Assembly: GCA_002104945.1 (NCBI GenBank)
Contig: MCFH01000032.1
Span: 186,001 to 250,000, forward strand
DNA from: Piromyces finnis finn
Taxonomy: Eukaryota > Fungi > Neocallimastigomycota
Direction of reading: 5' to 3'
DNA length: 64,000 nt
Part shown: positions 9,842 through 58,177 of the stretch, piece after piece
Layout of the letters: every line of letters begins with the position of its first letter
How positions within the stretch are numbered: position 1 is the stretch's first letter
Position numbers and translations under genes: made by a program
Notes under the pieces: model-generated
Databases searched by the model: none
Told to the model about the DNA's origin: nothing
Seen by the model: only the letters and a program-made list of their open reading frames with translations

Positions 9842-9913
9842 AGCAGCGTAGCGCAGTGGAAGCGTGGTGGGCTCATAACCCACAGGTCGTATGATCGAAA
9901 CATACCGCTGCTA
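9842..9913 (+). tRNA. tRNA-iMet: Initiator tRNA-Met (CAT), copy 1
   Basis: AGCAGCG/CGCTGCT acceptor stem with A1:U72, GTGGG-CTCATAA-CCCAC anticodon arm with three G-C pairs, T loop ATCGAAA (A54/A60), T-runs downstream. Confidence 0.97.
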
Positions 9914-9998
9914 ATAAATTTTATTTATTTTTTTATTTTAACAAAAACCTTGCTCGCCGCGCGTAACGGCAAAAGATCCCTCCTGGGAGTGTAGTTGA

Positions 9999-10438
9999 CC
10001 CTCTTGGGAACGTGCCTTCATTTATTTAATAATGGAGTTTATCAAGGGGGTCTACTCATGCTCATACCCTCTTGGGAACGTGCCTTCATTTATTTAATAA
10101 ATGTAGTTTCTCAAGGGGGTCTACTCATGCTCATGGTACTGAGAGAGTAGAAAGAATTAAATCCAAGTATTGCGCAATGGATGCTTGGTGCCCTCTTAGG
10201 AATGTGCCTTCATTTATTTAATAAATGTAATTTCTCAAGGGGGTCTACTCATGCTCATGGTACTGAGAGAGTAGAAAGAATTAAATCCAAGTATTGCGCA
10301 ATGGATGCTTGGTGCCCTCTTAGGAATGTGCCTTCATTTATTTAATAAATGTAATTTCTCAAGGGGGTCTACTCATGCTCATGGTACTGAGAGAGTAGAA
10401 AGAATTAAATCCAAGCATTGCGCAATGGATGCTTGGTT
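9999..10438 (+). repeat. LINE 5' UTR tandem repeats (one 68-bp partial unit plus three 124-bp units)
   Basis: Units begin CCCTCTT(G/A)GG at 9999, 10067, 10191, 10315. The same units recur at 15844-16123 in copy 2. Confidence 0.92.
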
Positions 10439-11080
10439 AGTCTTCAAGGGAAAATTATTAGGACTAAGCTCATGGTACTGAGCGATTAAAAAACATTTTA
10501 TTCATCAAATTTAAGTATTTGATGAATAAGTGAATGTTTGATTTTTCAGGTAAGTTTGTATAGTATTTAATTAGAAGAGTAATACATTTTGTTGCTGTAT
10601 TTTTTCTTTTATTCATGTATTCATGTAGTACTACTCTTCTCTTGTAAGAATCCAATGTAGTCAACTTTAGCATTTGCATTGTATTTTTATATTCATGTAG
10701 CTATTGTTGTATTGTTTCTTGTAAGAGAATGATTCACTCTACATCATGTAAAAATACTATTCACAAGCTTTCTGGTGTCGACATTCTTGATTCAAATTTT
10801 TTACCAATTTAAATATTTAATGAAAAGTAAAGTCAAACAAGTTTAGTGTCAAAAAGCGAATCGAATTTACTAACAACAAACCAAAACTAGAATTTTTAAA
10901 GAAAATTTACAACTAGAATTCAAAAAAAAGAAACTTTAAACAAAGCATCGTAACAATTTTTGTACTATCCAGTACTTTTAAGAAGAGAGAGAGAGACAGA
11001 TTTTTTTCCATATACGTTATATTTATAATTTTATTAGTATTTATTTTATATTCAATATTTTTTAATTAGAATTTATTATC

Positions 11081-14000
11081 ATGTCAGTCCTTTATATTAA
11101 AGATAAGAATTATATCAGACGTGGTACCCGGTCTTATGGTATCCCCTTAGATGATATTCGCTCCTTCTTTATCCGTGGTATTCGATCATGGTCAGTAAAT
11201 ATGCTATGGGAAAAACTCGAGGTTATTCTAGAAGATAAATTTAATTCAGTTATTAGTGTTAAATATTTTCAAACTTTCAATGATCACTTTTTCTTAGTCA
11301 AGGTTCATGGTTCATCAAAAGATTGTATTAAAATCTTACACATGTTAAAGAAGAAACTTTCAGTTACCTCAATTTCCTTTTCAGCTCGTAGTAGAAGGAA
11401 TCACAAATACACTTTTTCCACACTCAAACGTAAAATTTTAGTTTCTAATAAACATCAACATTCTATTCAACAATCATTTCAACAATCAGTTCAACAATCA
11501 GTTCAACAATCTCACCAACAATCCGATCTTCAACAAGATCTTCAACAAGATCTTCAACAAGTTTCCAATCATGAAAATATTCCAGATCTACAGCAAACAC
11601 AATTTCAATCTCAACATTCAACAATTAATTCTAATAGTTCTATCAACTCTGATAACAGTTCAATAGTTGATAGTTCTTCAGTTTCACAGCCATCTAGTAA
11701 TAGTTCTACTTATTCCTCTGATGCATCATCCATTAATAACGATGACTTTAATAATAATAATAATAGCAACGATTCTTCCTCATCCAACAAGCCTGATAAC
11801 TTTTCTTTTTGTCTTAGTTGGAACACCAATGGGTGGAATCACGAAAAGAGAGATAGTATTAGCTATTTCACAGCTATTTTCAAACCATTATTCTTATGTT
11901 TCCAAGAAACTGGTAATGGTTCTGGTTCAAATACAGATTATCCTTGTCGTGTTACTTTGCGAAACTATAGACACTTTTTCAAGAAAGCTGACGAATCAGT
12001 TCCTGGAATGAGAGGTTTATATTTAGGTTTTCACAATTCGTGTCAAGCCTCACTTGAAAACTTCTCTGGAAAGTATATTATTTCTATTTATACTTTTAGT
12101 CTCTGGAATAGATTCAAATGCTCGATTGGAAATGTTTATGTGCCTCATAGTCATCACAACATCTATGTTGATCATGCAAAGTTAGAAGTTCGCTTGTGGT
12201 TACAAACTCATTCATCCCATCCATCGATTCTTGTTGGTGATTTTAATATGTCTAAAGTAAAATTATCCAACTGGTTATCAACTAATGGATTAGGAGATTG
12301 GGAAATTCTTCCGCTTAGAGGGTCTACTATCTCTTGGACTCGAGGTGATCAATCTTCCGACATTGACCATGCTCTTATCAATTCGAAGATGAAAGATCTT
12401 ATTCACTCAGGATCATTTATAAATAATTTTTATCCTGTATCAGACCATAAGCCACTTCTTATTAATGGTAAAATTATTCCTATGGAAGATTTTTCTAATG
12501 ACTTTAATGTTCCTAAGAAAATTCTGAAATGGAATAGATTAAAATGTATTGAGGAAAAGGAATCTATTCTTAGTCATAATAAATTCCAAATTCTTTCAGC
12601 AAAATTCAACGATCCTAATGTTTCTACAGATGAACTTTCCAAAGAATTTACTTCAACTGCTTTTTCAATTGCAGACGAGCTCAGTATTACCTCAGCAAAT
12701 AATGTTATAAAGTCTTCATTTCATATTTCACAACAAATTTTTAATCTCCAAAAAATCAAAATGAAGTTGTATAAGAGATTTAAAAATGAAAGAATTTATG
12801 ATATAGATGAATTTATTAAAAGAATTAAAATCTACCGTAAGCTCATTGATTACATCCACAAAAGATGTAATGAATTTAGGAAACAAGAATATCTTCATTG
12901 GATTAAAACAGGATGTGAGTATATGAAGAGTCATAATCCTAAGAAGGCCTGGAAATGGATCAAGAAAACTGCAAAAATTGGAAAAGATTCTTTCTTTATT
13001 GCTCAACCAATTAAAAACAAAAATGGAGAATTAGTTGTTGCTACGGAAGAACAACTAGATGTGTGGCATGATCATTTCGAAAAGCTTGCATCAGATCCAA
13101 GTGGTGTAAGTCTTGATTTGGAGCATTGGTATGAAGAACCAACGAATAAACGTTTTTCACTTCCTATGCTTGATGAGTGGGATATCAACCAAGATATTAG
13201 TATTGATGAAGTCAAGTCAGCTATCCTCTCTACTCCGAATTATAAAGCATCAGGTCCGGATGGTATTCCAATTGAATTTTACAAAGCATTAATTCCATCA
13301 AGTAATGATTCTAATAATGCTACAGATAATAATTCTTCCGGTAATACCACTTCAGATAATGACGCTCATGGTTTAAATTTTATTCTTAAATTATTTAACC
13401 GTATTTGGGATGGAGACTTCCCCAACTCATGGAATGAATCCAGTATTGTTTCTATTCCTAAGAAGGGAGATTTGACAGATTGTGATAACTATCGAGGTAT
13501 ATCACTTATCAATAATGGCATTAAGTTGATTTCCAAAATTGTCACCACTAGAATCTCAGAATATGGTTTAAAGAATAATTTCATTAGACCTGAACAATTT
13601 GGTTTTCGAAAAAAGGAAGAAAGTATTAGTCTTTTCATTTCAATCCAAGAAATATGCCGTAGACGTCAATTAGATAATAAAGAGACATATTTGGCCTTTT
13701 TAGATCTCAGGAAAGCATACGATTCAGTCCCAATTGGTAATATTCTCCATAAATTAGATTGTTTAGGAATCCGAGGTAAGAGTTTACAATTCATCAAAAA
13801 TTTATATTTAACATCTAAGGCTAATGTCAAATTAAATGGACAATTCTCGAAATCTTTTGATGTGAAGAAAGGAGTCCGTCAAGGTTGCCCTCTTTCTCCT
13901 ATTCTCTTTAATCTCTTTATTAATGATATATTTAGAGAGTGCGAAGATCTAGGAGTCAGTTTAGGTGACACTCGATGCTGTGGTGGACTTTTTGCAGATG

Positions 14001-15562
14001 ATATAGTTATTTGTGCTCCAACAAGAGGATGCTTAAAAAAGATGCTTAGAAGAGTTAATGAATGGGCCTTGTATAATGAAATGGAATTTGGTATACAGAA
14101 ATGTTCAACGATGGTGATTCGTCCTGAATCAATAGAAAATCAGAACAAGAGAGATCCAACATTTTACTTAGCAGGACAACCCATTCCAACTACTGATTGT
14201 TATACTTATCTTGGTGTTCCATTTGATAAGAATCTGTCCCTTAAACCAGTTATTAAAGCTCTTAATAACAAGGTTTTGAAAGGGCTTTTTTCAGTCAGTA
14301 AATTCTTAAGAAATCCTAATATTCCTATTCCCTTCAAAAAGATAGTACTTAACTCACAAGTGATTAGCAGAGTTTCATACTTTGCACCATTACTTGGATC
14401 CAACAAAGCCAGGTCTAGAATTGCTCAGAAGCATGTTAACAAAGGAATACGATGGGTTGCCGGAGTTCATAAAGCTGTATCGTTTATTTCTTTATACTCT
14501 ATTTCAAAAGATTTGAATATTCCTCCATTGTCAGCCAAATGTGCATTAGCTCAGGTTAGATGTTTTAACAAATGGAAAAACTCAAATTGTATTACCTCAT
14601 ACCTTGTCAATTACATTCCTAAATTTAGAAAATACACGTGGTGCAAATCAAGTAGGACACTTGATAAAAAATTAAAGAAACATGGAGATGTTAAAGCAGT
14701 TAAAAACTTTTATTGGAAAGATCTCAAAGGGAATTCAATCAAAGCGCAATATTATGATGATAATAAATTTATTGAAACTAAAGATTTTATTAAATTATGT
14801 TATGAGTACCCAGGGTTTGCCTATGGCTTCTACTGGCTCTTGAAAGCAAGAAGCGGATACAAGTTGGATGCTAGAGTTGCCAAAGCTGCCAAATTTGTTG
14901 ATCCAGTTTGTCCTAACTACTGTCCATGTTGCAAGTGTGGAGATCAAAGTATTAAACATTGGTTATTAGATTGTCCAACATTTAGAGATATCCGTATTAA
15001 ACATTATGATTCCATAGTCCAGCTACTAAATTTTTTCAGTCAACGTAATTCCAATAGTCCTATCAATAATAATGAAATTGATAATATCAGTAGAGATAGT
15101 AATAACATTAATAGTAATAGTAACAATAGTAGTAATAGAAATAATAATATTAGTAATGATAGCAATAGTGAAGATAATAATTCTAATTTAGATAGTAATT
15201 TAGTTAATGATAGTAATAGTTCTAATAATCCGGTGAATATTAATGTGTATGATTATTCTAGTGTGTGCAGTAAAATATTTAAATTCCTTCTTGGGGGAAG
15301 AAGTTTTAACAATATTAATTACAATTCAAGGGAATGGAAAGAACTTTGTAAGCGTCAGATTCAATCTGGTACTAACGAAGGAACACCATTCTTGACGGTA
15401 ACCGCGGAACTTCTAACCAAAATCATGCCTTTTGCTATTGGCCAGCAATGGACAATGTTCAAAAGGTTTGAAGCAACATCCAAGAGCGTCAATGCTGAAG
15501 AAACAGTAAGACAGGCCAGGAGGGCCAGCGCAACCAATGGAGATCATAATTTTGTCCCATGA
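11081..15562 (+). CDS. LINE polyprotein: N-terminal RRM-like domain, APE endonuclease, reverse transcriptase, CCHC-type zinc motif
   Basis: APE: SWNTNG, LCFQET, GDFN, DHAL, SDH. RT: GPDG, YRGISL, QFGFR, FLDLRKAYDSV, GVRQGCPLSPILFN, LFADD, YLG. Zinc motif: CPCCKCGDQSIKHWLLDC. Confidence 0.95.
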   Translation: MSVLYIKDKNYIRRGTRSYGIPLDDIRSFFIRGIRSWSVNMLWEKLEVILEDKFNSVISVKYFQTFNDHFFLVKVHGSSKDCIKILHMLKKKLSVTSISFSARSRRNHKYTFSTLKRKILVSNKHQHSIQQSFQQSVQQSVQQSHQQSDLQQDLQQDLQQVSNHENIPDLQQTQFQSQHSTINSNSSINSDNSSIVDSSSVSQPSSNSSTYSSDASSINNDDFNNNNNSNDSSSSNKPDNFSFCLSWNTNGWNHEKRDSISYFTAIFKPLFLCFQETGNGSGSNTDYPCRVTLRNYRHFFKKADESVPGMRGLYLGFHNSCQASLENFSGKYIISIYTFSLWNRFKCSIGNVYVPHSHHNIYVDHAKLEVRLWLQTHSSHPSILVGDFNMSKVKLSNWLSTNGLGDWEILPLRGSTISWTRGDQSSDIDHALINSKMKDLIHSGSFINNFYPVSDHKPLLINGKIIPMEDFSNDFNVPKKILKWNRLKCIEEKESILSHNKFQILSAKFNDPNVSTDELSKEFTSTAFSIADELSITSANNVIKSSFHISQQIFNLQKIKMKLYKRFKNERIYDIDEFIKRIKIYRKLIDYIHKRCNEFRKQEYLHWIKTGCEYMKSHNPKKAWKWIKKTAKIGKDSFFIAQPIKNKNGELVVATEEQLDVWHDHFEKLASDPSGVSLDLEHWYEEPTNKRFSLPMLDEWDINQDISIDEVKSAILSTPNYKASGPDGIPIEFYKALIPSSNDSNNATDNNSSGNTTSDNDAHGLNFILKLFNRIWDGDFPNSWNESSIVSIPKKGDLTDCDNYRGISLINNGIKLISKIVTTRISEYGLKNNFIRPEQFGFRKKEESISLFISIQEICRRRQLDNKETYLAFLDLRKAYDSVPIGNILHKLDCLGIRGKSLQFIKNLYLTSKANVKLNGQFSKSFDVKKGVRQGCPLSPILFNLFINDIFRECEDLGVSLGDTRCCGGLFADDIVICAPTRGCLKKMLRRVNEWALYNEMEFGIQKCSTMVIRPESIENQNKRDPTFYLAGQPIPTTDCYTYLGVPFDKNLSLKPVIKALNNKVLKGLFSVSKFLRNPNIPIPFKKIVLNSQVISRVSYFAPLLGSNKARSRIAQKHVNKGIRWVAGVHKAVSFISLYSISKDLNIPPLSAKCALAQVRCFNKWKNSNCITSYLVNYIPKFRKYTWCKSSRTLDKKLKKHGDVKAVKNFYWKDLKGNSIKAQYYDDNKFIETKDFIKLCYEYPGFAYGFYWLLKARSGYKLDARVAKAAKFVDPVCPNYCPCCKCGDQSIKHWLLDCPTFRDIRIKHYDSIVQLLNFFSQRNSNSPINNNEIDNISRDSNNINSNSNNSSNRNNNISNDSNSEDNNSNLDSNLVNDSNSSNNPVNINVYDYSSVCSKIFKFLLGGRSFNNINYNSREWKELCKRQIQSGTNEGTPFLTVTAELLTKIMPFAIGQQWTMFKRFEATSKSVNAEETVRQARRASATNGDHNFVP

Positions 15563-15800
15563 CAAAATTTTGATCTTTGGCTCGGTGTCCCATTGGAAGT
15601 CAAATACAATTATTATACTTTAGTATGATAGTGGCTTTCTTACTTTAATTAAAATTACTAGAATACATTATACCCAATTTTTATTCATTTGTGTTTATTT
15701 AAACATATTTTTTTTTATTATTATTTTTATTTTTTAATTTTTTATTACATGTATTATAATTTTAATTAAATTAATAATAAAGTTTATAATATTTGATGCC

Positions 15801-15843
<43 letters not shown>

Positions 15844-15846
<3 letters not shown>

Positions 15847-18800
15847 ATGCTCATGGTACTGAGAGAGTAGAAAGACCCTCTTGGGAACGTGCCTTCATTT
15901 ATTTAATAAATGTAGTTTCTCAAGGGGGTCTACTCATGCTCATGGTACTGAGAGAGTAGAAAGAATTAAATCCAAGTATTGCGCAATGGATGCTTGGTGC
16001 CCTCTTAGGAACGTGCCTTCATTTATTTAATAATGGAGTTTATCAAGGGGGTCTACTCATGCTCATGGTACTGAGAGAGTAGAAAGAATTAAATCCAAGC
16101 ATTGCGCAATGGATGCTTGGTTAGTCTTTAAGGGAAAATTATTAGGACTAAGCTCATGGTACTGAGCGATTAAAAAACATTTTATTCATCGAATTAAGTA
16201 TTTGATGAATAAGTTGAATGTTTGATATTCAGGTAAGTTTGTATAGTATTTAATTAGAAGAGTAATACATTTTGTTGCTGTATTTTTTCTTTTATTCATG
16301 TATTCATGTAGTACTACTCTTCTCTTGTAAGAATCCAATGTAGTCAACTTTAGCATTTGCATTGTATTTTTATATTCATGTAGCTATTGTTGTATTGTTT
16401 CTTGTAAGAGACTGATTCACTCTACATCATGTAAAAATACTATTCACAAGCTTTCTGGTGTCGACATTCTTGATTCAAATTTTTTACCAATTTAAATATT
16501 TAATGAAAAGTAAAGTCAAACAAGTTTAGTGTCAAAAAGCGATTCGAATTTACTAACAACAAACCAAAACTAGAATTTTTAAAGAAAATTTACAACTAGA
16601 ATTCAAAAAAAAGAAACTTTAAACAAAGCATCGTAACAATTTTTGTACTATCCAGTACTTTTAAGAAGAGAGAGAGAGACAGATTTTTTTTTCCATATAC
16701 GTTATATTTATAATTTTTATTAGTATTTATTTTATATTCAATATTTTTAATTAGAATTTATTATCATGTCAGTCCTTTATATTAAAGACAAGAATTATAT
16801 CAGACGTGGTACCCGGTCTTATGGTATCCCCTTAGATGATATTCGCTCCTTCTTTATCCGTGGTATTCGATCATGGTCAGTAAATATGCTATGGGAAAAA
16901 CTCGAGGTTATTCTAGAAGATAAATTTAATTCAGTTATTAGTGTTAAATATTTTCAGACTTTCAATGATCACTTTTTCTTAGTCAAGGTTCATGGTTCAT
17001 CAAAAGATTGTATTAAAATCTTACACATGTTAAAGAAGAAACTTTCAGTTACCTCAATTTCCTTTTCAGCTCGTAGTAGAAGGAATCACAAATACACTTT
17101 TTCCACTCTCAAACGTAAAATTTTAGTTTCTAATAAACATCAACATTCTATTCAACAATCATTTCAACAATCAGTTCAACAATCAGTTCAACAATCTCAC
17201 CAACAATCCGATCTTCAACAAGATCTTCAACAAGATCTTCAACAAGTTTCCAATCATGAAAATATTCCAGATCTACAGCAAACACAATTTCAATCTCAAC
17301 ATTCAACAATTAATTCTAATAGCTCTATCAACTCTGCTAACAGTTCAATAGTTGATAGTTCTTCAGTTTCACAGCCATCTAGTAATAGTTCTACTTATTC
17401 CTCTGATGCATCATCCATTAATAACGATGACTTTAATAATAATAATAATAGCAACGATTCTTCCTCATCCAACAAGCCTGATAACTTTTCTTTTTGTCTT
17501 AGTTGGAACACCAATGGGTGGAATCACGAAAAGAGAGATAGTATTAGCTATTTCACAGCTATTTTCAAACCATTATTTTTATGTTTCCAAGAAACTGGTA
17601 ATGGTTCTGGTTCAAATACAGATTATCCTTGTCGTGTTACTTTGCGAAACTATAGACACTTTTTCAAGAAAGCTGATGAATCAGTTCCTGGAATGAGAGG
17701 TTTATATTTAGGTTTTCACAATTCGTGTCAAGCCTCACTTGAAAACTTCTCTGGAAAGTATATTATTTCTATTTATACTTTTAGTCTCTGGAATAGATTC
17801 AAATGCTCGATTGGAAATGTTTATATGCCTCATAGTCATCACAACATCTATGTTGATCATGCAAAGTTAGAAGTTCGCTTGTGGTTACAAACTCATTCAT
17901 CCCATCCATCGATTCTTGTTGGTGATTTTAATATGTCTAAAGTAAAATTATCCAACTGGTTATCAACTAATGGATTAGGAGATTGGGAAATTCTTCCGCT
18001 TAGAGGGTCTACTATCTCTTGGACTCGAGGTGATCAATCTTCCGACATTGACCATGCTCTTATCAATTCGAAGATGAAAGATCTTATTCACTCAGGATCA
18101 TTTATAAATAATTTTTATCCAGTATCAGACCATAAGCCACTTCTTATTAATGGTAAAATTATTCCTATGGAAGATTTTTCTAATGACTTTAATGTTCCTA
18201 AGAAAATTCTGAAATGGAATAGATTAAAATGTATTGAGGAAAAGGAATCTATTCTCAGTCATAATAAATTCCAAATTCTTTCAGCAAAATTCAACGATCC
18301 TAATGTTTCTACAGATGAACTTTCCAAAGAGTTTACTTCAACTGCTTTTTCAATTGCAGACGAGCTCAGTATTACCTCAGCAAATAATGTTATAAAGTCT
18401 TCATTTCATATTTCACAACAAATTTTTAATCTCCAAAAAATCAAAATGAAGTTGTATAAGAGATTTAAAAAAGAAAGAATTTATGATATAGATGAATTTA
18501 TTAAAAGAATTAAAATCTACCGTAAGCTCATTGATTACATCCACAAAAGATGTAATGAATTTAGGAAACAAGAATATCTTCATTGGATTAAAACAGGATG
18601 TGAGTATATGAAGAGTCATAATCCTAAGAAGGCCTGGAAATGGATCAAGAAAACTGCAAAAATTGGAAAAGATTCTTTCTTTATTGCTCAACCAATTAAA
18701 AATAAAAATGGAGAATTAGTTGTTGCTACAGAAGAACAACTAGATGTGTGGCATGATCATTTCGAAAACCTTGCATCAGATCCAAGTGGTGTAAGTCTTG

Positions 18801-21540: not shown

Positions 21541-21611
21541 GTCGATGTTGGTTTTTTTGGTAATAGTGGACTCTTAATAGATAAGATTATATATTTTTCC
21601 AATACACAAAA

Positions 21612-22190
21612 TGATATTAATCTTAAATTTAAAATTTAATTCAAAAAGTGATTATTACATTATATCTTACTGTATAACTGTAATAAAATCAATAACTATA
21701 TGCAATAAAAGGAATAAAAGTAATTAGAAATAACAATAAAAGAAATAATTAAAAGCTAAAAAATATAAAAAGTTGTTTATTTTACAATTAAAGTAATAAA
21801 TATTTTAAATGTTTATTTTACAATTAATTAAAGTAATAATTATTTTTAATATTTTAATAAAAGTGTTTAATTATACTATTTTATAACATGAATTATTATA
21901 TTTGTTTACTTTTAAAGTGTAATTTACTAAAGAAATTATTAAATATTTAATTTAACAATTAATTTAACAAAAGTTATATATTTTGATCTCGATTAATTAA
22001 AGTTTATTATTTTCTTTCAATAATCAAAATATATGCAGTGTTAAGGATTAATTTTATTTTAGAATTTTGGTACAGTAATTAGTTAAACTAGAACTTATTT
22101 TAAAGTTACTTTTAGGGTTGACTTAAAAATCAGGTTTAATAATAATTTTATATTTATTAATTTTATATTTATTAATTTCATTATTTATCA
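21612..22190 (-). mobile_element. Solo LTR, family A/H (shorter variant)
   Basis: TGATA..TATCA ends flanked by A-runs. Both ends match the 802-bp H LTRs at 53681 and 62061. Near-identical copy at 36623-37198. Confidence 0.75.
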
Positions 22191-22193
22191 AAA

Positions 22194-24764: not shown

Positions 24765-24768
24765 AAAA

Positions 24769-25285
24769 TGATACGAAGAAAAATATTATCTTAATTCTAT
24801 AAATGAATATAGAAAGTGATAATATTTGTATCTAAAATTTAATAAATAAAAATAAATAAGAAAATAAAAATAGAATAAATGATTTTTATACTTGTTCATT
24901 TGCAAGTCTTTGTTAGTTTAAAATATAAAATTATTTTATTTAATTATAAAGTTTTAATATTTAATAACTCTTGTATTATTAAATATATATATGTTATGGT
25001 TTAATACATCTTGAATGTATGTAAATATAATCACAACTATTGTTTTAATAAAATTTAATATTATTATCTAATTTTACTGGATTATTAGGAACAATTTTAA
25101 AATAAAATGATTCTATCACTATTTATACAAAATTATTATTTTAAAGTATAATTATAAACAAATATAAACTATTTAATTTAAAAATAAATAAACAATTAAA
25201 TAGACAAAAAGTTTACATTTATAGTTTTTAATTTAATAATTTTATACAAGTTAATTATTTTAATTTTTAACTATCTGTGTTTTAA

Positions 25286-25328
<43 letters not shown>

Positions 25329-25360
25329 AATTCATAATTTATAAATTTAATTATTTATCA
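24769..25360 (-). mobile_element. Solo LTR, family D
   Basis: TGATACGAAG..ATTTATCA, flanked by AAAA/AAA. Matches the paired LTRs at 54487 and 55860. Confidence 0.8.
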
Positions 25361-25363
25361 AAA

Positions 25364-26151
25364 TGTAATAATTATTATATATTTAATAATAATTATTATC
25401 TACAATATAATAATACAAATCGTAATATGTATTATTAAATTGAGAAGTTTCTTAATAGTAAATAAAAATGAATACTTATCTTAAAGAGTTTATTATAAGT
25501 GAATTATAATAACAAACACAAAATATTAAGACTATCTTTAATGTAAATATTTTTTATGAATATAGTTTTTGAAAGGGTTATTTATTATAATTGTTTTAAA
25601 ATAATAACTCTGGATTCTTTAGTGGAATTCCAGAGTCCTTATATTTATAATTTGTTGATAATTTAAAGTTTAATAAAGAATTTCTAATCTTAACAAATAA
25701 TCTTTTTAGGAAAAGACTAGAAGAAAAACCTAAAAAGATATTCGATTGATAACTAATATATCAATCATCGTAATATTAAGTAAAACCGATTAAAATTCGG
25801 AAAAACCTTAATATCCGATTGTCCTAATATGTATTTATATTTTCTAATTGTTTCTATAAGTTATTTCAAGATACGATACATAAATATAAAATACAAACGT
25901 AAAATAAAATATATAATGTTTCTTATAAAATGTAATACAAAAATTATTAATTAAAAAATAAATGAATGTTTACTATTATTTTAAATATATTACTAAATTA
26001 AATAAATAAATAATTAATATAGTAATTAAATAAATTTTAAATTAAGTAAATGGAATAATTAATATCAATATAGATAAATGTTTATAGTAATTTAAATGAA
26101 TGTATGCTAATAGTTTAAATAAATAATTAATTTAATAATTAAAAAATAATT
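25364..26151. mobile_element. Putative solo LTR, family F, missing its last ~44 bp
   Basis: Starts TGTAATAATT after AAA. Reverse-complement match to 27208-28031. Cut off by E at 26152. Confidence 0.65.
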
Positions 26152-27151
26152 TGTAAAAGTTTTACTAAACTTATAATTTAATATTAAAATATTAAATTAA
26201 ATAAAAGGTTAAAAGATAACTAGGTTAGAAAAAAAATGTTTTATTAAAATAATCTTAATTGATTTATAAATGAATAATTATATTATGTATTATAGTTAAA
26301 ATAATTCCTTTTTATTTTATTTAAAGAATATATATAATAATAAGATTATTTAATAGTAATACTTATTAAGTATTAATAAGATAATAATCTTTACAAAGAT
26401 TTAATTCATAAAACTATTCTAAACTATTTATACTATTTGTAATTTTACATTTAATACTAAAATAACTTTTTAGTACATGATTATATTCATAATATATTTT
26501 ATAATACTAAGGCTAAACTTAAGACTTACTACTAATTATTAAAAATAACTATTGTTTATATATTTATAATATTAATTATTTCTTAATTATAATATAATTC
26601 ATTGAATATAATATTAATAATTATAATCCTCTAGTTCAAAGATTATAAATTATGTTATTGAAATAATTATTATAAAATAAAGTTAATTAGTTCCGGAAAA
26701 TAATTTTAATTTAATTAAACAATAATTTTTTATACTTTGAGTGAATGATTTATGTTTGATATATCAGGGGTGATCATTCTCTGAATAAACAATTAATCAT
26801 TGCTAACAAAATATCTTTAAATTGGAATATCTCGTGAACCAGCAGAGATATTGACCTGATTTTAAGATATGTTGTTTGTCTCGAGCGTGGCTTTCTAACG
26901 AACTTAATTATAACCAAAAAAGATACGCGTGTTTTTTCTTATTCCATTTTAACGATAAGGGTTAAAGTTATTTATTATAAAAATTATTAAGGGTTAAGGT
27001 CATATTTTAACCTTTTCTAAATTTTTAAATATTTCTTAATAAAATTTTATAATTTATTTGAAAATAAAATATTTGTTGATTTTGAATTTTCATAAGTGAT
27101 TTCACAATTCCAAGTGATCTTGAAATTGTAATTTCACTAGTATTCGTGACA
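26152..27151. mobile_element. Solo LTR, family E (1000 bp)
   Basis: TGTAAAAG..CGTGACA; near-identical to 56391-57976 once the SINE is removed. Left flank is family F, right flank is a family D end (27152-27203). Confidence 0.8.
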
Positions 27152-28031
27152 TTATTATTATTATTATTATAAATTCATAATTTATAAATTTAATTATTTA
27201 TCAAAAATGTAAGAATTAATAATTATTTTTTGTATAAATTAATTCTTATTTAATTATTTTTTAATTATTAAATTAATTATTTATTTAAACTATTAGCATA
27301 CATTCAGTTAAATTACTATAAACATTTATCTATATTGATATTAATTATTCATTTACTTAATTTAAAATTTATTTAATTACTATATTAATTATTTATTTAT
27401 TTAATTTAGTAATATATTTAAAATAATAGTAAACATTCATTTATTTTTTAATTAATAATTTTTGTATTACATTTTATAAGAAACATTATATATTTTATTT
27501 TACGTTTGTATTTTATATTTATGTATCGTATCTTGAAATAACTTATAGAAACAATTAGAAAATATAAATACATATTAGGACAATCGGATATTAAGGTTTT
27601 TCCGAATTTTAATCGGTTTTACTTAATATTACGATGATTGATATATTAGTTATCAATCGAATATCTTTTTAGGTTTTTCTTCTAGTCTTTTCCTAAAAGG
27701 ATTATTTGTTAAGATTAGAAATTCTTTATTAAACTTTAAATTATCAAAAAATTATAAATATAAGGACTCTGGAATTCCACTAAAGAATCCAGAGTTATTA
27801 TTTTAAGACAATTATAATAAATAACCCTTTCAAAAACTATATTCATAAAAAATATTTACATTAAAGATAGTCTTAATATTTTGTGTTTGTTATTATAATT
27901 CACTTATAATAAACTCTTTAAGATAAGTATTCATTTTTATTTACTATTAAGAAACTTCTCAATTTAATAATACATATTACGATTTGTATTATTATATTGT
28001 AGATAATAATTATTATTAAATATATAATAAT

Positions 28032-28852
28032 TGTAAAATATTGTATTAATAGAATAATGTATTTAATACGTATTTAAAATAATGTACAATGTATTGAATT
28101 AATGTACCGTAAATCTTTACAATATTTATATCACAATACATTAACATAAATTTATGTAAATCTAATTTTATGATAAGATAAAGTTTTTGATGATAAAATA
28201 AATTTTTTAAATTAAATAATTTTTAACCAATAAATATTTAGATGAGAAAAAATTTTTTTTTATAAACTAAGCCTCAAAACTCAAAATTAGAAATAAATAA
28301 ATTAAATATATGTTTGAAATATAATCAACCATATAGTAAATAAATCAAAACTTTATTTTAAGTTTAGAAAATTCTTTAGTAAATAAATTGAATTTAAATA
28401 GTTTAATACAAATAATTTCTTTTAATAAATGTATAAATATAAACAATGTAAAATTATAATATTAAAACATGTATATTAGAATTTATTCAATTTATTTAAA
28501 AAGTATAAATAAAGAAAATTTTTCAACTATTGAAACGATAGTTGGAAAATCGTATAGTTTAGTTATATAGTTAGTTTAGATTATTAGTTTTAATTTAATT
28601 AGTTAATAAGTGATTACCTAGTGAGGGCTCTGGTGAAATAACCTTCACGGTAAAGTAATCAACGGTTGTTTTAGTTTTAGTTTAGTTTAGTTTAATATAA
28701 TTGAATAAATAAATAAAGTTTAATAATAAATAAATTTATAACTAGTGTTAGTTTGATTTAGTGTATACAAACCTGAACTTAGAATAGAATATTTTACAAT
28801 TTTCCAACTTATTAGAATAGAAAGTTCACCTTTGTATACGAATAGTAATAGA

Positions 28853-28885
<33 letters not shown>

Positions 28886-28943
28886 TTAATTATAGTGAGA
28901 ATTTAATAATAGATTAAATTCGGGGATTATATAAAAAATATTA

Positions 28944-28979
<36 letters not shown>

Positions 28980-31900
28980 TTTGTTAGAAATTAATTTTAG
29001 TTAATTTCGGGGTATTTTATAATTATTTGGTATAGAACAATTTGTTGTTAAAATAGTTTAATAGTTAATAATCAATAAATAATAATAATAAAAATATATT
29101 AGTTTGGTTAATAACTAGTTGTTAGTTTAGTAGTAGTAAATAATAAAAAGGTTAGTATAGTATAATAATAAGGTTGTTAAATTATTTATTTAATATAAGA
29201 ATAAAATAATTAGGAATAGTCAAGTTGAATAGTATAAATAATTGGGATATTAAATATTGGTTGACTATTTGTTGTTTATTAAGTAGTAATATGAATACTA
29301 GATATAGAATGTTAGACAACCGTGACGATGGAATAGCTGGAGTCAGTGACGCAGGCTCTGAGGCGAGTTCCATGATGGATATTGAGGATGAGACTGGTAA
29401 AAGCGTTAACACCAGGGGAAAACTCATCCCAAAACCTCCAAGATTTTCGGGAAAAAGAAGTGAACTTCTTTACTTCCTGGCAAGATTGGAGAAATACTTT
29501 AAATATAACTTGGAAGAAGATGCTACCGACGCCTACAAGCTGGATATATTGGGATGCTACCTGGAAGGAACCGCCGCCGAATGGTTTGCCGACTTGGAAA
29601 GAGAAGAAAGCCCCCTGTTGAACTCCTATGAAGATTTTATTGAGGCAATGAAGGCTCGCTATAAAACCTGTAACAGTGCCGATGTAGCCAACAGTCGACT
29701 TGCAAAGTTAAAATCAAGCCAATTCAAGAACGTCATGGACTACTGCGAGGAATTTGAAAAGATGGCTAGAGACTCGTCCTTTAATGATGAAGCAAAGATC
29801 CATTTCTTTATGGAAGGTTTACCAACTTCAGTCAAGGAAAAAGCGAAGCTCCTTTACCCAAGAATTAGAAAGATAACTGAGTTAATTAATGTTGTTGCTG
29901 CCAATGTAGAAGTAGAATGGAAAGTCTTCGGAAAGGATCCTATGGATGTCGACGGAAAGAAGAACCGAAGATATAACAGAGACTTAGGAACAAGGTACCT
30001 CTCTTATGGTGTAAAATATAGAAATTATGTAGATCAAGAAACCCTTACAACCTCAGCTAAGCCTAGAAAATGTTTCTTCTGCAAAAGGACTGGACATATT
30101 AAGAAGGATTGTCCTCAACTTAAGGATAAGGTTATAAATAGACCAAAAGCGTTTATGGCTACTACCGCTGGAAGAAGAATGTTAAATGTTTATGACATTC
30201 TATTACAAGTCAATAATGGAGTGTATCTTAAAGCTCTTGTGGATTCTGGTTCGGACTTAGACTTTTTGGATTGGAAAGCCGTGGACAAGTACAAGATCCC
30301 ATTCCAAAGAATGTTTAAGGATAAGTTTGTTGAAGGTATAGGTGGTAATGGATTCTTGAAGTATGAAACAATTCCTTTAATCATGAACATCAAGAATCAT
30401 AAAGAATCCATTCAATTCTACCTTACTGATCTTCCTTCTGGTATTTCTGTCATTCTGGGTAAGAATTGGTTAAGAAAACACGATCCTACAATTAGCTTTA
30501 AGGATCAAACTCTTGAATTCAAATCCGAATTCTGTTCTTTGAATTGCTGTGCTACTCCAGAAGACATGAAAAGAAGAAATCAAGAAGCGCAATTGGCCAA
30601 AGAAGAAGAAAGAAGAAAAGAAAAGGAACTCGTACAAGAAATACTTAACAATTATAAGAATAGTTTAAAAATTAGAGAAAGTGAAATTAGGAATAAAGAA
30701 AATAGAAAAATTATAGATAAAAATAAAAATTCATGTATTAAAAAGAAATGTAGTAAAAATTTAAAATTAAATAAAAAGAATGTTCAAAAGTATATTGTAT
30801 GTAGTGTTCTTTCAAATGATGAAAATAGTGGTGAAGATGTTAGAGAAAATGTTATAGAAATTCCAGATGTATATAAGGAATTTGAAAGTGTATTTGATGA
30901 AGTTGAGTGTAATGAACTACCTCCACATCGAATATACGATTGTAAAATAAGATTGAAAGATAAAGATAACTTATTTTATGGTCCTTTATACCCTCTAACA
31001 GAAGAAGAAAGGAATACGTTAAAGGAGTATATTTCTGAAAATTTAGAAAAAGGATTTATTAGACCGTCTACTTCACCTGCCGGAGCACCTGTGTTGTTCG
31101 TTAGGAAAAAGGATGGGACTTTAAGATTGTGTGTTGACTACCGAAGACTCAATGAAAACACAATCAGAGATTCATATCCGTTGCCTCTCATATCAGAATT
31201 ATTCGATAGATTAAGGGAAGCAAAAGTATTTACTAAACTTGATCTCAAGTCTGCTTATAATCTAGTTCGAATAAATGAAGGTGATGAATATAAGACTGCA
31301 TTTAGGACAAGATTTGGTCACTTTGAATATCTTGTCATGCCGTTTGGATTAAAAAACGCTCCTGCAACTTTCCAACATTTTATCAATGATGTTCTCGGGG
31401 AATACTTGGATGAATTCGCCTTTTCTTATATTGATGATATTCTTATCTATTCGAAAAACTTGGAAGAACACCGAAAGCATGTAAAGAAAGTTCTTCAAAG
31501 ATTAAAAGAAAATGGTCTTTATGCGAAACTTAGCAAATGTGAATTTGAAACTTCAGAAACTACTTTCTTAGGGCATGTTATCTCAGATAAGGGAATCTCT
31601 ATGGATCCAAAAAAGGTTAAAGCTATTATGGAATGGCCTGTGCCAACATCTGTTAAAGAAGTTCAGTCGTTTATTGGATTATGCAATTATTATAGAAGAT
31701 TTATTCCAAACTTTGCTGGTATTGCTAAACCGTTACATAATCTAACTAAGAAAGATGTCAATTTTCATTGGCCAGAAGAATGTAATGAAGCTTTTTGTAT
31801 ATTAAAGAAATTCTTTACCGAGGAACCAATTTTAATTCATGCTGATCCTGCATTACCTTTTGTGGTTGAGACAGATGCAAGTAATTTTGCAATCGGTGCT

Positions 31901-34571
31901 GTATTGTCTCAAAGGTTACCGAATAATAATGAACTTCATCCAATTTGTTATTATTCAAGGGGATTGACTAAATCGGAAAAGAATTATCCTATTTATGATA
32001 AGGAACTTTTGGCTGTTATTGAAGCTTTGAAACAATGGAGACATTACTTAGAAGGAGCTAAGCATCAATTTATGATCTACACAGATCATAAAAATCTTAC
32101 TTTTCCAAGGAAGCCCGAATTATTATCGCAAAGACAAATTCGATGGAATTTGTTCTTAACACGTTATGACTTCAAAATACAATATAGACCGGGTAAAGAA
32201 GGTGGAAAACCTGATGCTTTTTCAAGACGCCCTGATTATGAAAAGGAAAAAATTAATAAAGAAGATGAAGAAGCTTATTCCTGTTTGACAGTTAAAGAAA
32301 TCGAAGATACTTTATGTCTTGTGTCTATTCAAGGGAATCTTAAAGAAGATTTAGTTAAAGAAATTAAAGAAGATGAAGAAATTAAAGAGTTAATAAAAAT
32401 ACTACAAGGAAAATCTACCGCAAATAAGAAGTATAAGAAATTAATGAAAAATTTTAAGTTAAGCGAAGAAGGAATTCTTTTGTATAAAAGTTTAATTTAT
32501 GTACCAAAGAAAATGAGAGATATAATAATCTCAATGCATCATGACAATCCAATTCATGGTCATTTTGGTATTATTAAAACAAAAGAATTAATTACAAGAA
32601 ACTTTGTTTGGATAAACATGACTCAAGATATAGTTAAGTTTATTGCTTCTTGTAAAGTTTGTGGAGCTGCTAAGGTTGATCGTCATAGACCTTATGGATT
32701 TTTACAGCCGTTACCTACTCCTGAAAGACCGTGGTCTTCTGTTTCAATGGATTTTATAACTGATTTGCCAAAGTCAAAGGAAAAAACAGTTATAATGGTT
32801 GTTGTGGATAGATTAACGAAGATGGCTCACTTTATTCCGTTTAGAATGATTCCTACTGCTCAAATTGCTGCTGATGTTTTCTTTAGAGAAGTTTTTCGTT
32901 TACATGGTCTACCTGATGAAATAATATCGGATCGAGGAACCCAGTTTACTTCAGAATTTTGGCAAAGATTATGCACTTTGTTGAACATAAAGCACAATAT
33001 TTCGAGTGCTCACCATCCTCAAACAGACGGGCAGACTGAACGTGTAAATAGTATATTAGAACAATTTCTTAGATGTTACATTAACAAAAGAAAAGATAAC
33101 TGGATGAATCTTCTGCCTTATGCCGAATTTGCGTATAATAATACACTTCAGCAATCTATAAATCAAACACCATTCTTTGCAAATTATGGGCAAAATCCAA
33201 GATTTAATACCGATATTCCTGCTGATAGTGACAACAGAAGAGCTAACAGGCACGCCTCTCAGATGCAAGATAATATTAAATTTTTAAAGAAGAACTTAGA
33301 AAAAGCCAAGGAAAGATATAAGAAGTATGCCGATTGTATTAGACTTATTGGACCTAAGTTAAAGGTTGGTGACTTAGTTTGGTTAAAGCGTCCTGACTTA
33401 CTTCCTAAAGGACCTCCAAAATTAACAAATAAGAAACTTGGACCATTTAAGATTATTGAAAAAACAGGACCCGTTTCTTATAAATTGGAACTACCAGAAA
33501 GTTTAAGATGTCATCCCGTTTTCCATATTTCGAACTTAGAACCTTATGTTGAAAGAGAAGTTGAAGTGAATGAATCAACTTCTAGAATTCCAAACATTGC
33601 TACCGATTCTGTTGAAGGAAGAATTCCATTGAAGATAGTTAGTGAAAAAGTTGTTAATGGAATTAAGTACTACTTTATGGTTTGGAAAAACTTATTACCT
33701 TCAGAAAGTACATGGCTTAAAGAAGATGAAATCGATGACCCTCAAATGATCCAGGAATACCTTAAATATAAGTCGCTCAGGGGCTCGACTTAAGAAGAGG
33801 GGCATGTAAAATATTGTATTAATAGAATAATGTATTTAATACGTATTTAAAATAATGTACAATGTATTGAATTAATGTACCGTAAATCTTTACAATATTT
33901 ATATCACAATACATTAACATAAATTTATGTAAATCTAATTTTATGATAAGATAAAGTTTTTGATGATAAAATAAATTTTTTAAATTAAATAATTTTTAAC
34001 CAATAAATATTTAGATGAGAAAAAATTTTTTTTTATAAACTAAGCCTCAAAACTCAAAATTAGAAATAAATAAATTAAATATATGTTTGAAATATAATCA
34101 ACCATATAGTAAATAAATCAAAACTTTATTTTAAGTTTAGAAAATTCTTTAGTAAATAAATTGAATTTAAATAGTTTAATACAAATAATTTCTTTTAATA
34201 AATGTATAAATATAAACAATGTAAAATTATAATATTAAAACATGTATATTAGAATTTATTCAATTTATTTAAAAAGTATAAATAAAGAAAATTTTTCAAC
34301 TATTGAAACGATAGTTGGAAAATCGTATAGTTTAGTTATATAGTTAGTTTAGATTATTAGTTTTAATTTAATTAGTTAATAAGTGATTACCTAGTGAGGG
34401 CTCTGGTGAAATAACCTTCACGGTAAAGTAATCAACGGTTGTTTTAGTTTTAGTTTAGTTTAGTTTAATATAATTGAATAAATAAATAAAGTTTAATAAT
34501 AAATAAATTTATAACTAGTGTTAGTTTGATTTAGTGTATACAAACCTGAACTTAGAATAGAATATTTTACA
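28032..34571 (+). mobile_element. Full-length Ty3/gypsy LTR retrotransposon (chromovirus-like) 1
   Basis: 767-bp LTRs 28032-28798 and 33805-34571 (TG..CA, no differences seen by eye), TSD ATAAT, PPT AAGAAGAGGGGCA, single gag-pol ORF. Confidence 0.97.
29290..33793 (+). CDS. Gag-Pol polyprotein (Gag, CCHC, protease, RT, RNase H, integrase, chromodomain-like tail)
   Basis: CFFCKRTGHIKKDC, ALVDSGS, YIDD, VETDAS, HDNPIHGH..CKVC, SMDFI, SDRG, QTER, YFMVWKN..ESTW. First ATG at 29290; the ORF track starts at an upstream TTG. Confidence 0.95.
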
Positions 34572-34598
34572 ATAATTATTACAAAAAAATTGTAAAGA

Positions 34599-34670
34599 AG
34601 CAGCGTAGCGCAGTGGAAGCGTGGTGGGCTCATAACCCACAGGTCGTATGATCGAAACATACCGCTGCTA
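34599..34670 (+). tRNA. tRNA-iMet: Initiator tRNA-Met (CAT), copy 2
   Basis: Identical to 9842-9913. Confidence 0.97.
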
Positions 34671-34732
34671 AGAAATTTTAATTTTATTTTTTTTAACAAA
34701 AGCCTTGTTCGCCGTGCGTAACGGCAAAAGAT

Positions 34733-36551
34733 TGAATGGGCATTGTATAATGAAATGGAATTTGGTATCCAGAAATGTTCAACAATGGTGATTCATCCTG
34801 AATCAATAGAAAATCGGAACAAGAAAGATCCAACATTTTACTTAGCAGGAAAACCCATTCCAACTACTGACTGCTACACTTATCTTGGTGTTCCATTTGA
34901 TAAGAATTTGTCCCTTAAACCAGTTATTAAAACTCTTAATAACAAAGTTCTGAAAGTATTCTTTTCAGTCAGTAAATTCTTAAAAAATCCTGATATTCCT
35001 ATTTCTTTCAAAAAGCTAGTACTTAACTCACAAGTGATTAACAGAGTTTCATACTTTGCACCATTACTTGGATCCAACAAAGCTAGGTCTAGGATTGCTC
35101 AGAAGCATGTTAACAAAGGAATACGATGGGTTGCCGGAGTTCATAAAGCTGTATCGTTTATATCTTTATACTCTATTTCAAAAGATTTGAGTATTCCTCC
35201 ATTGTCAGCCAAATGTGCGTTAGCTCAGGTTTGATGTTTTAACAAATGGAAAAACTCGAATTGTATTATCTCACACCTTGTCAATTACATTCCTAAATTT
35301 AGAAAATATACATGGTGCAAATCAAGTAGGACACTTGATAAAAAACTAAAGAAACATGGAGATGTTAAAGCAGTTAAAAACTTTTATTGGAAAGATCTCA
35401 AAGGAAATTCAATCAAAGCACAATATTATGATGATAATAAATTTATTGAAACTAAAGATTTTATCAAATTATGTTATGAGTACCCAGAATTTGCCTATGG
35501 TTTCTACTGGCTATTGAAAGCAAGAAGCGGATACAAGTTGGATGCTAGAGTTGCAAAAGCTGCTAAATTTGTTGATCCAGTTTGTCCTAACTATTGTCCA
35601 TGTTGCAAGTGTGGTGTTCAAAGTATTAAACATTGGTTATTAGATTGTCCAACATTTAGAGATATCCGTATTAAACATTATGATTCCATAGTCCAGCTAT
35701 TAAATTTTTTCAGTCAACGTAATTCCAATAGTCCTATCAATAATAATGAAAATGTTAATATCAGTAGAGATAGCAATAACAGTAATAGTAATAGTAACAA
35801 TAGTACTAATAATATTAACAATAGTAATAGTAACAATAGTAATAATAACAATAATAATAATAACAATAATAGTAATAGAAATAATAATATTAGTAATGAT
35901 AGCAATAGTGAAGATAATAATTCTAATTTAGATAGTAATTTAGTTAATGATAGTAATAGTTCTAATAATCCGGTGAATATTAATGTGTATGATTATTCTA
36001 GTGTGTGCAGTAAAATATTTAAATTCCTTATTGGGGGAAGAAGTTTTAACAATATCAATTACAATTTAAGGGAATGGAAAGAACTTTGCAAGTGTCAGAT
36101 TCAATCTGGCACTAATGAAGGAACACCATTCTTGACGGTAACCGCGGAACTTCTAACCAAAATCATGCCTTTTGCTATTGGCCAGCAATGGTCAATGTTC
36201 AAAAGGTTTGAAGCAACATCCAAGAGCGTCAATACTGAGGAAACAGTAAGACAGGCCAGGAGGGCCAGCACAACCAATGGAGATCATAATTTTGTTCCAT
36301 GACAAAATTTTGATCTTTGGCTCGGTGTCCCATTGGAAGTCAAATACAATTATTATACTTTAGTATAATAGTGGCTTTCTTACTTTAATTAAAATTACTA
36401 GAATACATTATACCCAATTTTTATTCATTCGTGTTTATTTAAACATATTTTTTTTATTTTTATTTTTAATTTTTTTTTATAACATGTATTATAATTTTAA
36501 TTAAATTAATAATAAAGTTTAAAAATATTTGATACCGTTAAAAAAAAAAAA
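34733..36551 (+). mobile_element. 5'-truncated LINE, copy 3 (non-functional)
   Basis: Starts within RT (EWALYNEMEFG), in-frame TGA at 35232-35234, same 3' UTR, poly(A). Begins 62 bp after tRNA copy 2. Confidence 0.93.
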
Positions 36552-36622
36552 GTCGATGTTGGTTTTTTTGGTAATAGTGGACTCTTAATAGATAAGATTA
36601 TATATTTTTCCAATACACAAAA

Positions 36623-46235: not shown

Positions 46236-46240
46236 GTAAA

Positions 46241-58111: not shown

Positions 58112-58177
58112 AGGAATTATTATTCTTTTGTAAGAAAATCTTGTATCTGATCAAGTGGTGCAAGTTTGATTTTGGTC

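Follow-up and report, generated by a model that had tools for sequence, protein, structure and literature searches.

The LINE that lies behind tRNA-iMet genes in this 64,000-nucleotide stretch of the Piromyces finnis genome (the window, that is, all of the DNA analysed here) is an ordinary, young and very abundant L1-like element, with a single ORF for APE plus RT, a poly(A) tail and 124-bp repeats that make up its 5′ UTR. Insertion, by target-primed reverse transcription, goes into essentially arbitrary sequences with TSDs of 11–13 bp, and the element is not site-specific. The window contains three paralogous tRNA-iMet units, each followed at 62–66 bp by a LINE of different lineage and age. 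A 3′ junction common to two of these LINEs belongs to a copied patch, and a 5′ nucleotide common to two may mark a favoured spot that was used twice.

Organization of the tRNA-iMet locus

The features of the window are listed below, with positions counted from its first letter.

7389–9164, forward strand: HSP90 coding ORF (Pfam HSP90, E 2e-234), given as context
9760–9841, forward strand: U, the 82-bp region upstream of tRNA gene 1, about 80% similar to what follows copies 2 and 3
9842–9913, forward strand: tRNA-Met(CAT) gene 1 (ARAGORN; Rfam RF00005, 61.8 bits)
9914–9977, forward strand: S1, a 64-bp spacer with the shared 16-mer at its end
9978–15843, forward strand: LINE copy 1, full length
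15844–21540, forward strand: LINE copy 2, with its 5′ start inside a 5′ repeat unit
21506–22197, forward strand: patch A, made up of ~22 nt from the end of the LINE tail, where a private G-to-A variant lies, then poly(A), U′ and an LTR-type repeat
21541–21611: U′, within patch A
21612–34573, no strand assigned: LTR stack 1, between U′ and tRNA gene 2
34599–34670, forward strand: tRNA-Met(CAT) gene 2 (ARAGORN; Rfam)
34671–34732, forward strand: S2, a 62-bp spacer and paralogue of S1
34733–36551, forward strand: LINE copy 3, 5′-truncated
36517–37205, forward strand: patch B, comprising LINE tail with the private variant of patch A, poly(A), U″ and an LTR-type repeat
36552–36622: U″, within patch B
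58040–58111, forward strand: tRNA-Met(CAT) gene 3 (ARAGORN; Rfam)
58112–58177, forward strand: S3, a 66-bp spacer with weak similarity to S1 and S2 (equalled by 28 of 2000 shuffles)
58178–59055, forward strand: relics of an older LINE relative

The three tRNA-Met(CAT) genes are identical in sequence, and over the 154 bp of tRNA plus spacer units 1 and 2 differ by 7 mismatches and 2 gaps. The G+C-rich last 23 nt of S1 occurred in S1 and S2 only in a whole-genome search. LTR stacks between the tRNA genes are colinear at 95–99.5% identity; stack 1 contains a Ty3/gypsy element (28032–34573) with identical 769-bp LTRs, which ends 25 bp before tRNA gene 2. The decayed relative that the first-pass annotation had noticed was recovered behind tRNA gene 3, starting 66 bp after the gene (58178–58334, 85% identical); the relic at 58178–58337 matches LINE nucleotides 4563–4718 at 85% and amino acids 1154–1206, and that at 58980–59055 matches amino acids 1198–1222.

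An Rfam scan of the spacer and U regions returned no match besides the tRNAs, and hairpins at the spacer ends revealed no consistent structure (z = −2.5 for S2, 0.1 for S1 and −0.3 for S3). We rejected a preserved empty site behind tRNA gene 3: taken as a whole, S3 resembles S2 plus U only marginally (28 of 2000 shuffles), with no significant similarity past the junction. The LINE array starts 814 bp past the HSP90 stop codon and shares its orientation with HSP90.

Architecture and abundance of the LINE family

Copy 1 carries an intact ORF (11081–15562, 1493 aa) encoding APE plus RT, three 124-bp units in its 5′ region (10067–10437) and a poly(A) tail of 40 (15804–15843); at its start, a non-canonical 21 nt and a 68-nt partial repeat unit precede the canonical 5′ end. 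Copy 2 directly adjoins this 40-A tail and has its own intact ORF (16766–21286, 1506 aa) and a poly(A) of 13 (21528–21540). Copy 3 begins at LINE position 4082, with a broken ORF and a poly(A) of 12. Domains in the LINE ORF comprise Pfam Exo_endo_phos (245–456) and RVT_1 (792–1047), with a weak hint of zf-RVT (E 0.022).

Across the 56-Mb genome, the family numbers about 390 full-length copies (389 candidate 5′ regions) and more than 1100 copies in total (candidate 3′ ends). Its traits include poly(A) tails of 12–58, truncated copies and TSDs (11–12 and 13 bp in genomic copies L015 and L019), and copies very often stand head to tail with one another. In copy L038, 12 nt of the LINE start and LINE nucleotides 4049–4167 lie in front of the canonical 5′ end; the family makes such 5′ add-ons by template jumps.

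This design resembles that of human-type L1, an APE-class poly(A) LINE: APE precedes RT in one polypeptide, whose best solved-structure matches are to human L1 ORF2p (E 5e-34), and the poly(A) tail, frequent 5′ truncation, short TSDs of 11–13 bp, dispersed insertion and 5′ template-jump add-ons are likewise shared. Unlike L1, the fungal LINE has no separate ORF1 (none precedes the APE-RT ORF, and the 5′ 1.1 kb contains no further ORF of at least 70 aa), its protein carries an N-terminal extension of ~240 aa, its 5′ UTR is built of 124-bp repeats, and its copies are frequently arranged head to tail.

A copied patch accounts for the common 3′ junction

As first described, poly(A) is followed by GTCGATGTTGG at 21541 after copy 2 and at 36552 after copy 3; the matching motif at 9760, 82 bp before tRNA gene 1, has one mismatch. 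Rather than a second independent junction, this is a copied patch of ~680 bp with its left edge inside the LINE tail. Homology after copies 2 and 3 extends over 657 bp past the poly(A) at 99.4% identity, compared with the 11 bp reported earlier, whereas the LINE parts of the two copies are 94.7% identical. The differences between them end after 21505, within the LINE tail, and the private G-to-A tail variant that both carry is absent from 19 other full-length rows. One substitution, a 3-nt indel and the length of the poly(A) still distinguish patches A and B. The patch probably arose by recent gene conversion or local duplication.

Two other origins were considered and rejected. Had copy 2 or 3 carried U′-LTR along by 3′ transduction, its LINE part would match the identity of the flank; it is less identical. 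A copy 2 composed of a new 5′ part and an old resident 3′ part is at odds with a 3′ part that is young and has only 2–4 variants in common with copy 3. Among separate lineages, the 5′ junction is common to two and the 3′ junction is common through the copied patch only.

Two LINE lineages begin at the same target nucleotide

Copies 1 and 3 do abut the same 16-mer, CGTAACGGCAAAAGAT, which has exact matches at 9962–9977 and 34717–34732, two occurrences compared with 0.04 expected by chance. At both loci the 16-mer ends 62–64 bp behind the tRNA-iMet gene, and directly downstream come the LINE 5′ end (at 9978) and LINE position 4082 (at 34733). The earlier statement that no TSD is visible also stands, on comparison of the junctions of the window copies.

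The three copies differ in lineage and age. In a tree, copy 2 pairs with L023 of another contig (support 94/91), copy 1 falls in a different clade, and copy 3 stands alone on a long branch. Differences among the three copies are concentrated at positions that vary across the family; column-majority states from 19 genomic copies served for counting differences. The best genome-wide match is 96% for copy 3 and 99–100% for the searched ends of copies 1 and 2, whose ORFs are intact where that of copy 3 is broken; copy 3 is older than copies 1 and 2. With LINE bodies that belong to separate lineages and differ in age, simple duplication does not account for the shared 5′ target nucleotide. The first-pass annotation had reasoned from independent 5′ ends to a precise target: two separate events do look likely, given these lineages and ages, but a precise sequence target is not supported.

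We also rejected a microhomology-mediated deletion as the origin of the second locus, since the join has no microhomology and an AAAAGAT repeat lies 15 nt off the needed place, as well as a long TSD in which insertion duplicated a 218-bp tRNA unit, since the units have diverged by 10–20% where copies 1 and 2 lie about 1% away from the family majority, and S3 fails to match S2.

The family has no precise sequence target

R1/R2 and Tx1-clade elements such as Dewa have nearly all copies in one target sequence. Within the window the fungal LINE resembles them, in that full-length and truncated copies abut the same target nucleotide. Elsewhere the resemblance ends: most copies do not occupy one target, the flanks of ~20 canonical 5′ ends of other copies are unrelated, and their 3′ flanks are likewise unrelated. 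Such random flanks are the observation that the first-pass annotation had itself named as speaking against a site-specific LINE. A search for empty sites found the junction motifs only at the two filled, paralogous loci of the window and nowhere else in the 56-Mb genome, so that outside this cluster there is no empty site. An endonuclease that recognizes a precise spacer sequence between tRNA genes, as in Tx1/Dewa or R2 elements, would explain why the target nucleotides are identical on both sides of LINEs differing in length. Given that dozens of copies, sampled from hundreds in the genome, have unrelated flanks and ordinary TSDs, that the supposed target is present at two filled loci only and that the 3′ junction was copied, we consider that proposal almost certainly wrong.

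A weak, co-oriented association with tRNA genes

No tRNA gene lies within ~1 kb upstream of 29 other full-length copies (0 of 29) or at other 3′ loci (0 of 29). A pattern search of the genome nevertheless found co-oriented canonical LINE 5′ ends 35, 36, about 50–79 and 94 nt behind tRNA 3′ ends, with Rfam confirming two of the four tRNAs. These four hits, set against ~390 full-length copies, place roughly 1% of them 35–94 bp behind tRNA genes, where ~0.4–1.2 hits would be expected by chance on a rough estimate. In the opposite orientation 0–1 copies lie near tRNA genes, though 3′ ends are about three times more numerous. The data support in part a modest, co-oriented excess of full-length copies 35–94 bp behind tRNA genes, a weak directional bias whose basis is four pattern hits and a tRNA gene count that is itself uncertain. 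The surroundings of tRNA genes in this genome are full of transposons, which could inflate the association. The genome has 22 tRNA-iMet matches, including several duplicated sequences, and a LINE lies behind the three window loci only.

Dictyostelid elements Dd_TRE3-A/B/C insert 14–305 nt downstream of tRNA genes, and 60 of 67 Dd_TRE3-A copies are tRNA-associated (PMC5006619). The comparison with TRE3 drawn in the first-pass annotation survives as to placement: both are non-LTR elements in a broad window downstream of tRNA genes (35–94 nt for the fungal LINE), both occupy the same tRNA flank repeatedly, and LTR elements pile up upstream of those genes. The resemblance is otherwise loose, with ~1% of copies tRNA-adjacent here as against essentially all TRE3 copies, which lie nearly without exception within a few hundred bp downstream of tRNA genes. 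TRE elements also have two ORFs, with APE, RT and a zinc finger in ORF2, whereas the fungal LINE has a single 1493-aa ORF, and its host is a fungus rather than an amoeba.

Explanations for the shared 5′ nucleotide

We tentatively favour the view that the identical 5′ nucleotide of copies 1 and 3 reflects re-use of a favoured spot in paralogous spacers. One favoured break position would have served in both spacers, and its re-use may be part of a weak co-oriented preference that the LINE has for the ~100 bp immediately behind pol III genes. Several observations fit this poorly: neither window locus has a TSD, though the family makes 11–13-bp TSDs elsewhere; a non-specific endonuclease would not be expected to hit one nucleotide twice; the tRNA association comes from four pattern hits in transposon-rich surroundings; and the spacer end and U start coincide with the limits of homology between tRNA units, which hints at a LINE-linked rearrangement rather than insertion into a pre-existing array. 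The main rival, shared descent with rearrangement, takes up that hint but strikes us as doubtful. Here one ancestral LINE behind one tRNA-iMet gene would have been followed, without targeting, by tandem duplication of tRNA-spacer-LINE-U-LTR, for example through unequal exchange between identical tRNA genes, with a later deletion in the second unit and newer copies in the first. Both flanks are paralogous with motifs unique to the two loci, the LTR stacks are colinear at 95–99.5% identity, the patch proves that copying between units occurs, and a missing TSD is easier to accept once than twice. Yet the LINE bodies are of different ages and do not group together as closest relatives, the deletion would have had to break exactly at the first nucleotide of the element without microhomology, no route swaps a truncated copy for a full-length one at the same nucleotide, and the spacer after tRNA gene 3 and its LINE relic misfit a simple repeat unit.

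The constant partner end joined to variable LINE positions also recalls U6-L1-type chimeric retrocopies, formed with template jumps at a small pol III gene region. In such a scheme, RT would copy LINE RNA to the 5′ end or to position 4082 and then jump to the 3′ end of a U-tRNA-spacer RNA, so that the inserted unit is U-tRNA-spacer-LINE-poly(A) and the constant spacer end is the RNA 3′ end. It would account for the TSD missing around the LINE and for unit limits at the LINE junctions, and both L038 and the odd extra 5′ pieces of copy 1 show 5′ add-ons in this family. We nonetheless judge it improbable: unlike the U6 partner, this one would carry 82 nt of leader and 64 nt of trailer, several T runs in the spacer should terminate pol III, and we know of no RNA spanning U, tRNA and spacer. 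Moreover, the divergence between U and U′, and between S1 and S2, far exceeds the age of the LINE copies, no copies occur outside the window cluster, and a TSD flanking a whole unit was not found. An assembly artefact, in which mis-joining or consensus polishing across repeats created the near-identical patch and perhaps part of the unit structure, would suit the abrupt step from 94.7% to 99.4% identity in a region almost wholly made of repeats; it is highly improbable, given the one substitution, the 3-nt indel and the poly(A) lengths that set the patch copies apart, and flanking structures that are distinct and coherent on both sides.

Implications

These results remove a false lead, in that the LINE is no new sequence-specific element. 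The locus also shows clearly how a junction can be carried from one repeat unit into another, here probably by gene conversion, and it calls for caution when target specificity is deduced from junctions, as converted junctions can mimic independent insertions.

If confirmed, the weak but directional link between an otherwise promiscuous LINE and the region just behind tRNA genes would be of significance. In the literature searched, downstream-of-tRNA targeting by non-LTR elements is described for dictyostelids only (PMC5006619, PMC5911963). Two TSD-less insertions at one nucleotide point to a break not made by the element, and it is conceivable, if rather unlikely, that besides ordinary endonuclease-driven insertion the LINE exploits DNA ends which the host makes repeatedly at a fixed position just behind active pol III genes. 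Such ends might arise where a replication fork or a transcription complex stalls at the tRNA gene, and would yield co-oriented TSD-less insertions, re-use of the same nucleotide and head-to-tail arrays. If true, it would represent a facultative mode of tRNA-flank targeting, convergent with that of dictyostelid TRE3 and mechanistically different from it.

A retroelement nest around three tRNA-iMet genes

The source genome (56.46 Mb, 232 contigs) is very AT-rich, and the window is a dense retroelement nest surrounding three identical tRNA-Met(CAT) genes, clustered downstream of an HSP90 gene (7389 onward). This gene is co-oriented, and the LINE array begins 814 bp past its stop codon, at 9978.

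Features of the window
9842 (start), tRNA-Met(CAT) gene 1
9978-15843, LINE copy 1
15844-21540, LINE copy 2
28032-34573, intact Ty3/gypsy element (gag, RT, RNase H, integrase, chromodomain; ORF 29225-33793)
34599 (start), tRNA-Met(CAT) gene 2
34733-36551, LINE copy 3
37781-49654, Copia-type element with identical 270-bp LTRs, interrupted by a nested Ty3/gypsy element
40293-40841 and 45692-46240, LTRs of the nested Ty3/gypsy element (99.8% identical; ORF 41187-45422)
58040 (start), tRNA-Met(CAT) gene 3

The intact Ty3/gypsy element, whose 769-bp LTRs are 100% identical, ends 25 bp upstream of tRNA 2 and looks like very recent tRNA-upstream targeting. The LTR stacks preceding tRNA 2 (21612-27207) and tRNA 3 (36623-58029) share their repeat families and the order of these, at 95-99.5% identity. 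They represent either duplication of one segment or LTR families targeting tRNA genes that arrived at each gene in successive waves.

A young, high-copy LINE family

The LINE encodes a single ORF, intact at 1493 aa in copy 1 and 1506 aa in copy 2, with APE endonuclease and RT domains; the best solved-structure matches of its protein are human L1 ORF2p, and a search of the element for ORF1 found none. Its 5' UTR consists of 124-bp repeats and its 3' end is poly(A). A first look at the genome gave 389 candidate 5' regions and 1142-1365 candidate 3' ends, with the best-matching copies 97-100% identical; the family is young and high-copy. Canonical 5' ends (about 20 examined) always open on the first base of a repeat unit. 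Most copies begin cleanly with two units; the start of copy 1 (9978-10066) is atypical: a non-canonical 21-mer, similar to a mutated LINE start, and after it a partial unit of 68 nt come before the usual repeats.

Copy 2 directly adjoins the 40-A tail of copy 1. Such head-to-tail pairs are common, occurring at about 6 of 29 other LINE 5' loci and 2 of 29 other 3' loci, and in them the second copy begins where the poly(A) of the first stops, a pattern suggestive of insertion into poly(A) tails or some other self-association.

Head-to-tail LINE pairs and arrays at sampled genomic loci
L034, L037, L039, L046, L056, L011, L013
G000:C1 at 1521750, 1527263 and 1532884

The family is not site-specific

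The junctions described in the first-pass annotation are real. An identical 16-mer precedes copy 1 (9978), which is full length, and copy 3 (34733), which begins at LINE position 4082; it has exactly two occurrences in the window, where chance alone would give 0.04. Poly(A) followed by a common 11-mer lies behind copies 2 and 3 (at 21541 and 36552), and a counterpart of the 11-mer with one mismatch sits 82 bp before tRNA 1. The decayed relative, a much older LINE relic at 85% identity, begins 66 bp behind tRNA 3, past a spacer only weakly similar to the other two. From these junctions the annotation had proposed a site-specific LINE with a precise target, naming unrelated flanks at other copies as the refuting outcome.

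Other copies have such flanks, and the proposal is refuted. The sequences preceding about 20 canonical LINE 5' ends are unrelated to one another, as are the 3' flanks among sampled copies, and two truncated copies with both ends recovered (L015 and L019) carry ordinary target-site duplications (TSDs) of 11-12 and 13 bp. ARAGORN was run on 29 further 5' loci, each with about 1.2 kb upstream of the LINE, and on 29 further 3' loci, and detected no tRNA in any of them. With up to three mismatches allowed, a genome-wide search placed the final 23 nt of the spacer and the 29 nt that follow the poly(A) only at the two window loci, and among 22 genomic tRNA-iMet matches, several of them duplicated sequences, this LINE lies behind only the three in the window. 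The LINE family is not site-specific.

Origins of the shared junctions

Within the LINE, copies 2 and 3 share 94.7% identity, with 64 mismatches and 11 gaps, the differences being evenly distributed as far as 21505. Beyond that point, across the poly(A) and a 657-bp flank, identity rises to 99.4%, and the two differ by one substitution, one 3-nt indel and one A in tail length. Because this identity, together with a G-to-A variant 9 nt before the poly(A) that is common to both copies and found in 0 of 19 other full-length rows, extends into the LINE tail, the left edge of the identical tract lies inside the element; on the right the tract stops where an LTR-type repeat ends. Such a tract is the signature of one unit being copied to the other, by gene conversion or a local duplication, and not that of a single site hit by two insertions. 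Our verdict is that gene conversion pasted one junction in the tRNA-iMet cluster.

Each of the three LINE bodies is a separate event. A maximum-likelihood tree was built from the final 1.8 kb of the LINE in the window copies and in 19 further genomic copies; it groups copy 2 with one that lies on another contig (support 94/91), places copy 1 in another clade and leaves copy 3 solitary on a long branch. Differences among the three cluster at family-polymorphic sites in linked combinations, indicating different source lineages rather than random decay after a duplication. The best genome match of copy 3 reaches 96%, and its neighbours are absent from the 40 best matches; the searched ends of copies 1 and 2 have matches at 99-100%. 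With the ORF broken in copy 3 and intact in the others, tree and match levels indicate that copy 3 is older than copies 1 and 2 and that no copy is a recent duplicate of another.

The claim of independent 5' ends at the same nucleotide therefore survives in part: LINEs of different lineage and length do abut it in two paralogous spacers (7 mismatches and 2 gaps over 154 bp including the tRNA), but a precise sequence target does not hold. Attempts to derive locus B (tRNA 2 with copy 3) from a locus like A (tRNA 1 with copies 1 and 2), or A from one like B, considered deletion, unequal exchange, gene conversion, 3' transduction and a long TSD; each ran into ages that conflict or called for a breakpoint of improbable exactness. 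The simplest account is apparently re-use of one favoured break position behind paralogous tRNA genes, although the junctions fall just where homology between the tRNA units runs out, and no TSD was found at the copy 1 and copy 3 junctions, in agreement with the annotation but atypical for the family. Nor do these 5' junctions show microhomology. A minor rival, in which template switching created the tRNA-spacer-LINE joins, draws on the capacity of LINE 5' ends to bear template-jump add-ons: in a full-length copy at L038 (reverse complement, 1120-1251), 12 nt of LINE start joined to LINE nt 4049-4167 precede the canonical 5' end, which looks like the product of reverse-transcriptase template jumps.

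Modest directional association with tRNA genes

We measured the tRNA-LINE association by pattern counts in the genome. At four other loci, pattern matches placed co-oriented canonical LINE 5' ends 35, 36, about 50-79 and 94 nt behind tRNA 3' ends, with two of the four tRNAs confirmed independently by the Rfam tRNA model; by a rough estimate, chance would give 0.4-1.2 matches in windows of this kind (about 390 full-length copies, 1000-2900 tRNA-like genes). The opposite orientation gave 0-1 match, though 3' ends are about threefold more numerous. The LINE thus shows a modest directional enrichment behind tRNA genes, 5- to 15-fold and involving about 1% of copies. At G000:C170:245996-246128 (minus), an Rfam-confirmed tRNA has about 40 consecutive Ts immediately behind it, possibly the tail of an inverted retroelement; AT-rich sequence comes next, and then, about 94 nt from the tRNA, a LINE 5' end in the same orientation.

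The suggested likeness to Dictyostelium TRE3 is loose: 60 of 67 Dd_TRE3-A copies are tRNA-associated, a near-obligate relationship (PMC5006619), whereas the association here concerns about 1% of copies. The Piromyces LINE is an ordinary dispersed L1-like element inside a repeat-rich tRNA-iMet cluster, and its residual interest is that it may use tRNA 3' flanks facultatively and directionally, leaving no TSDs.
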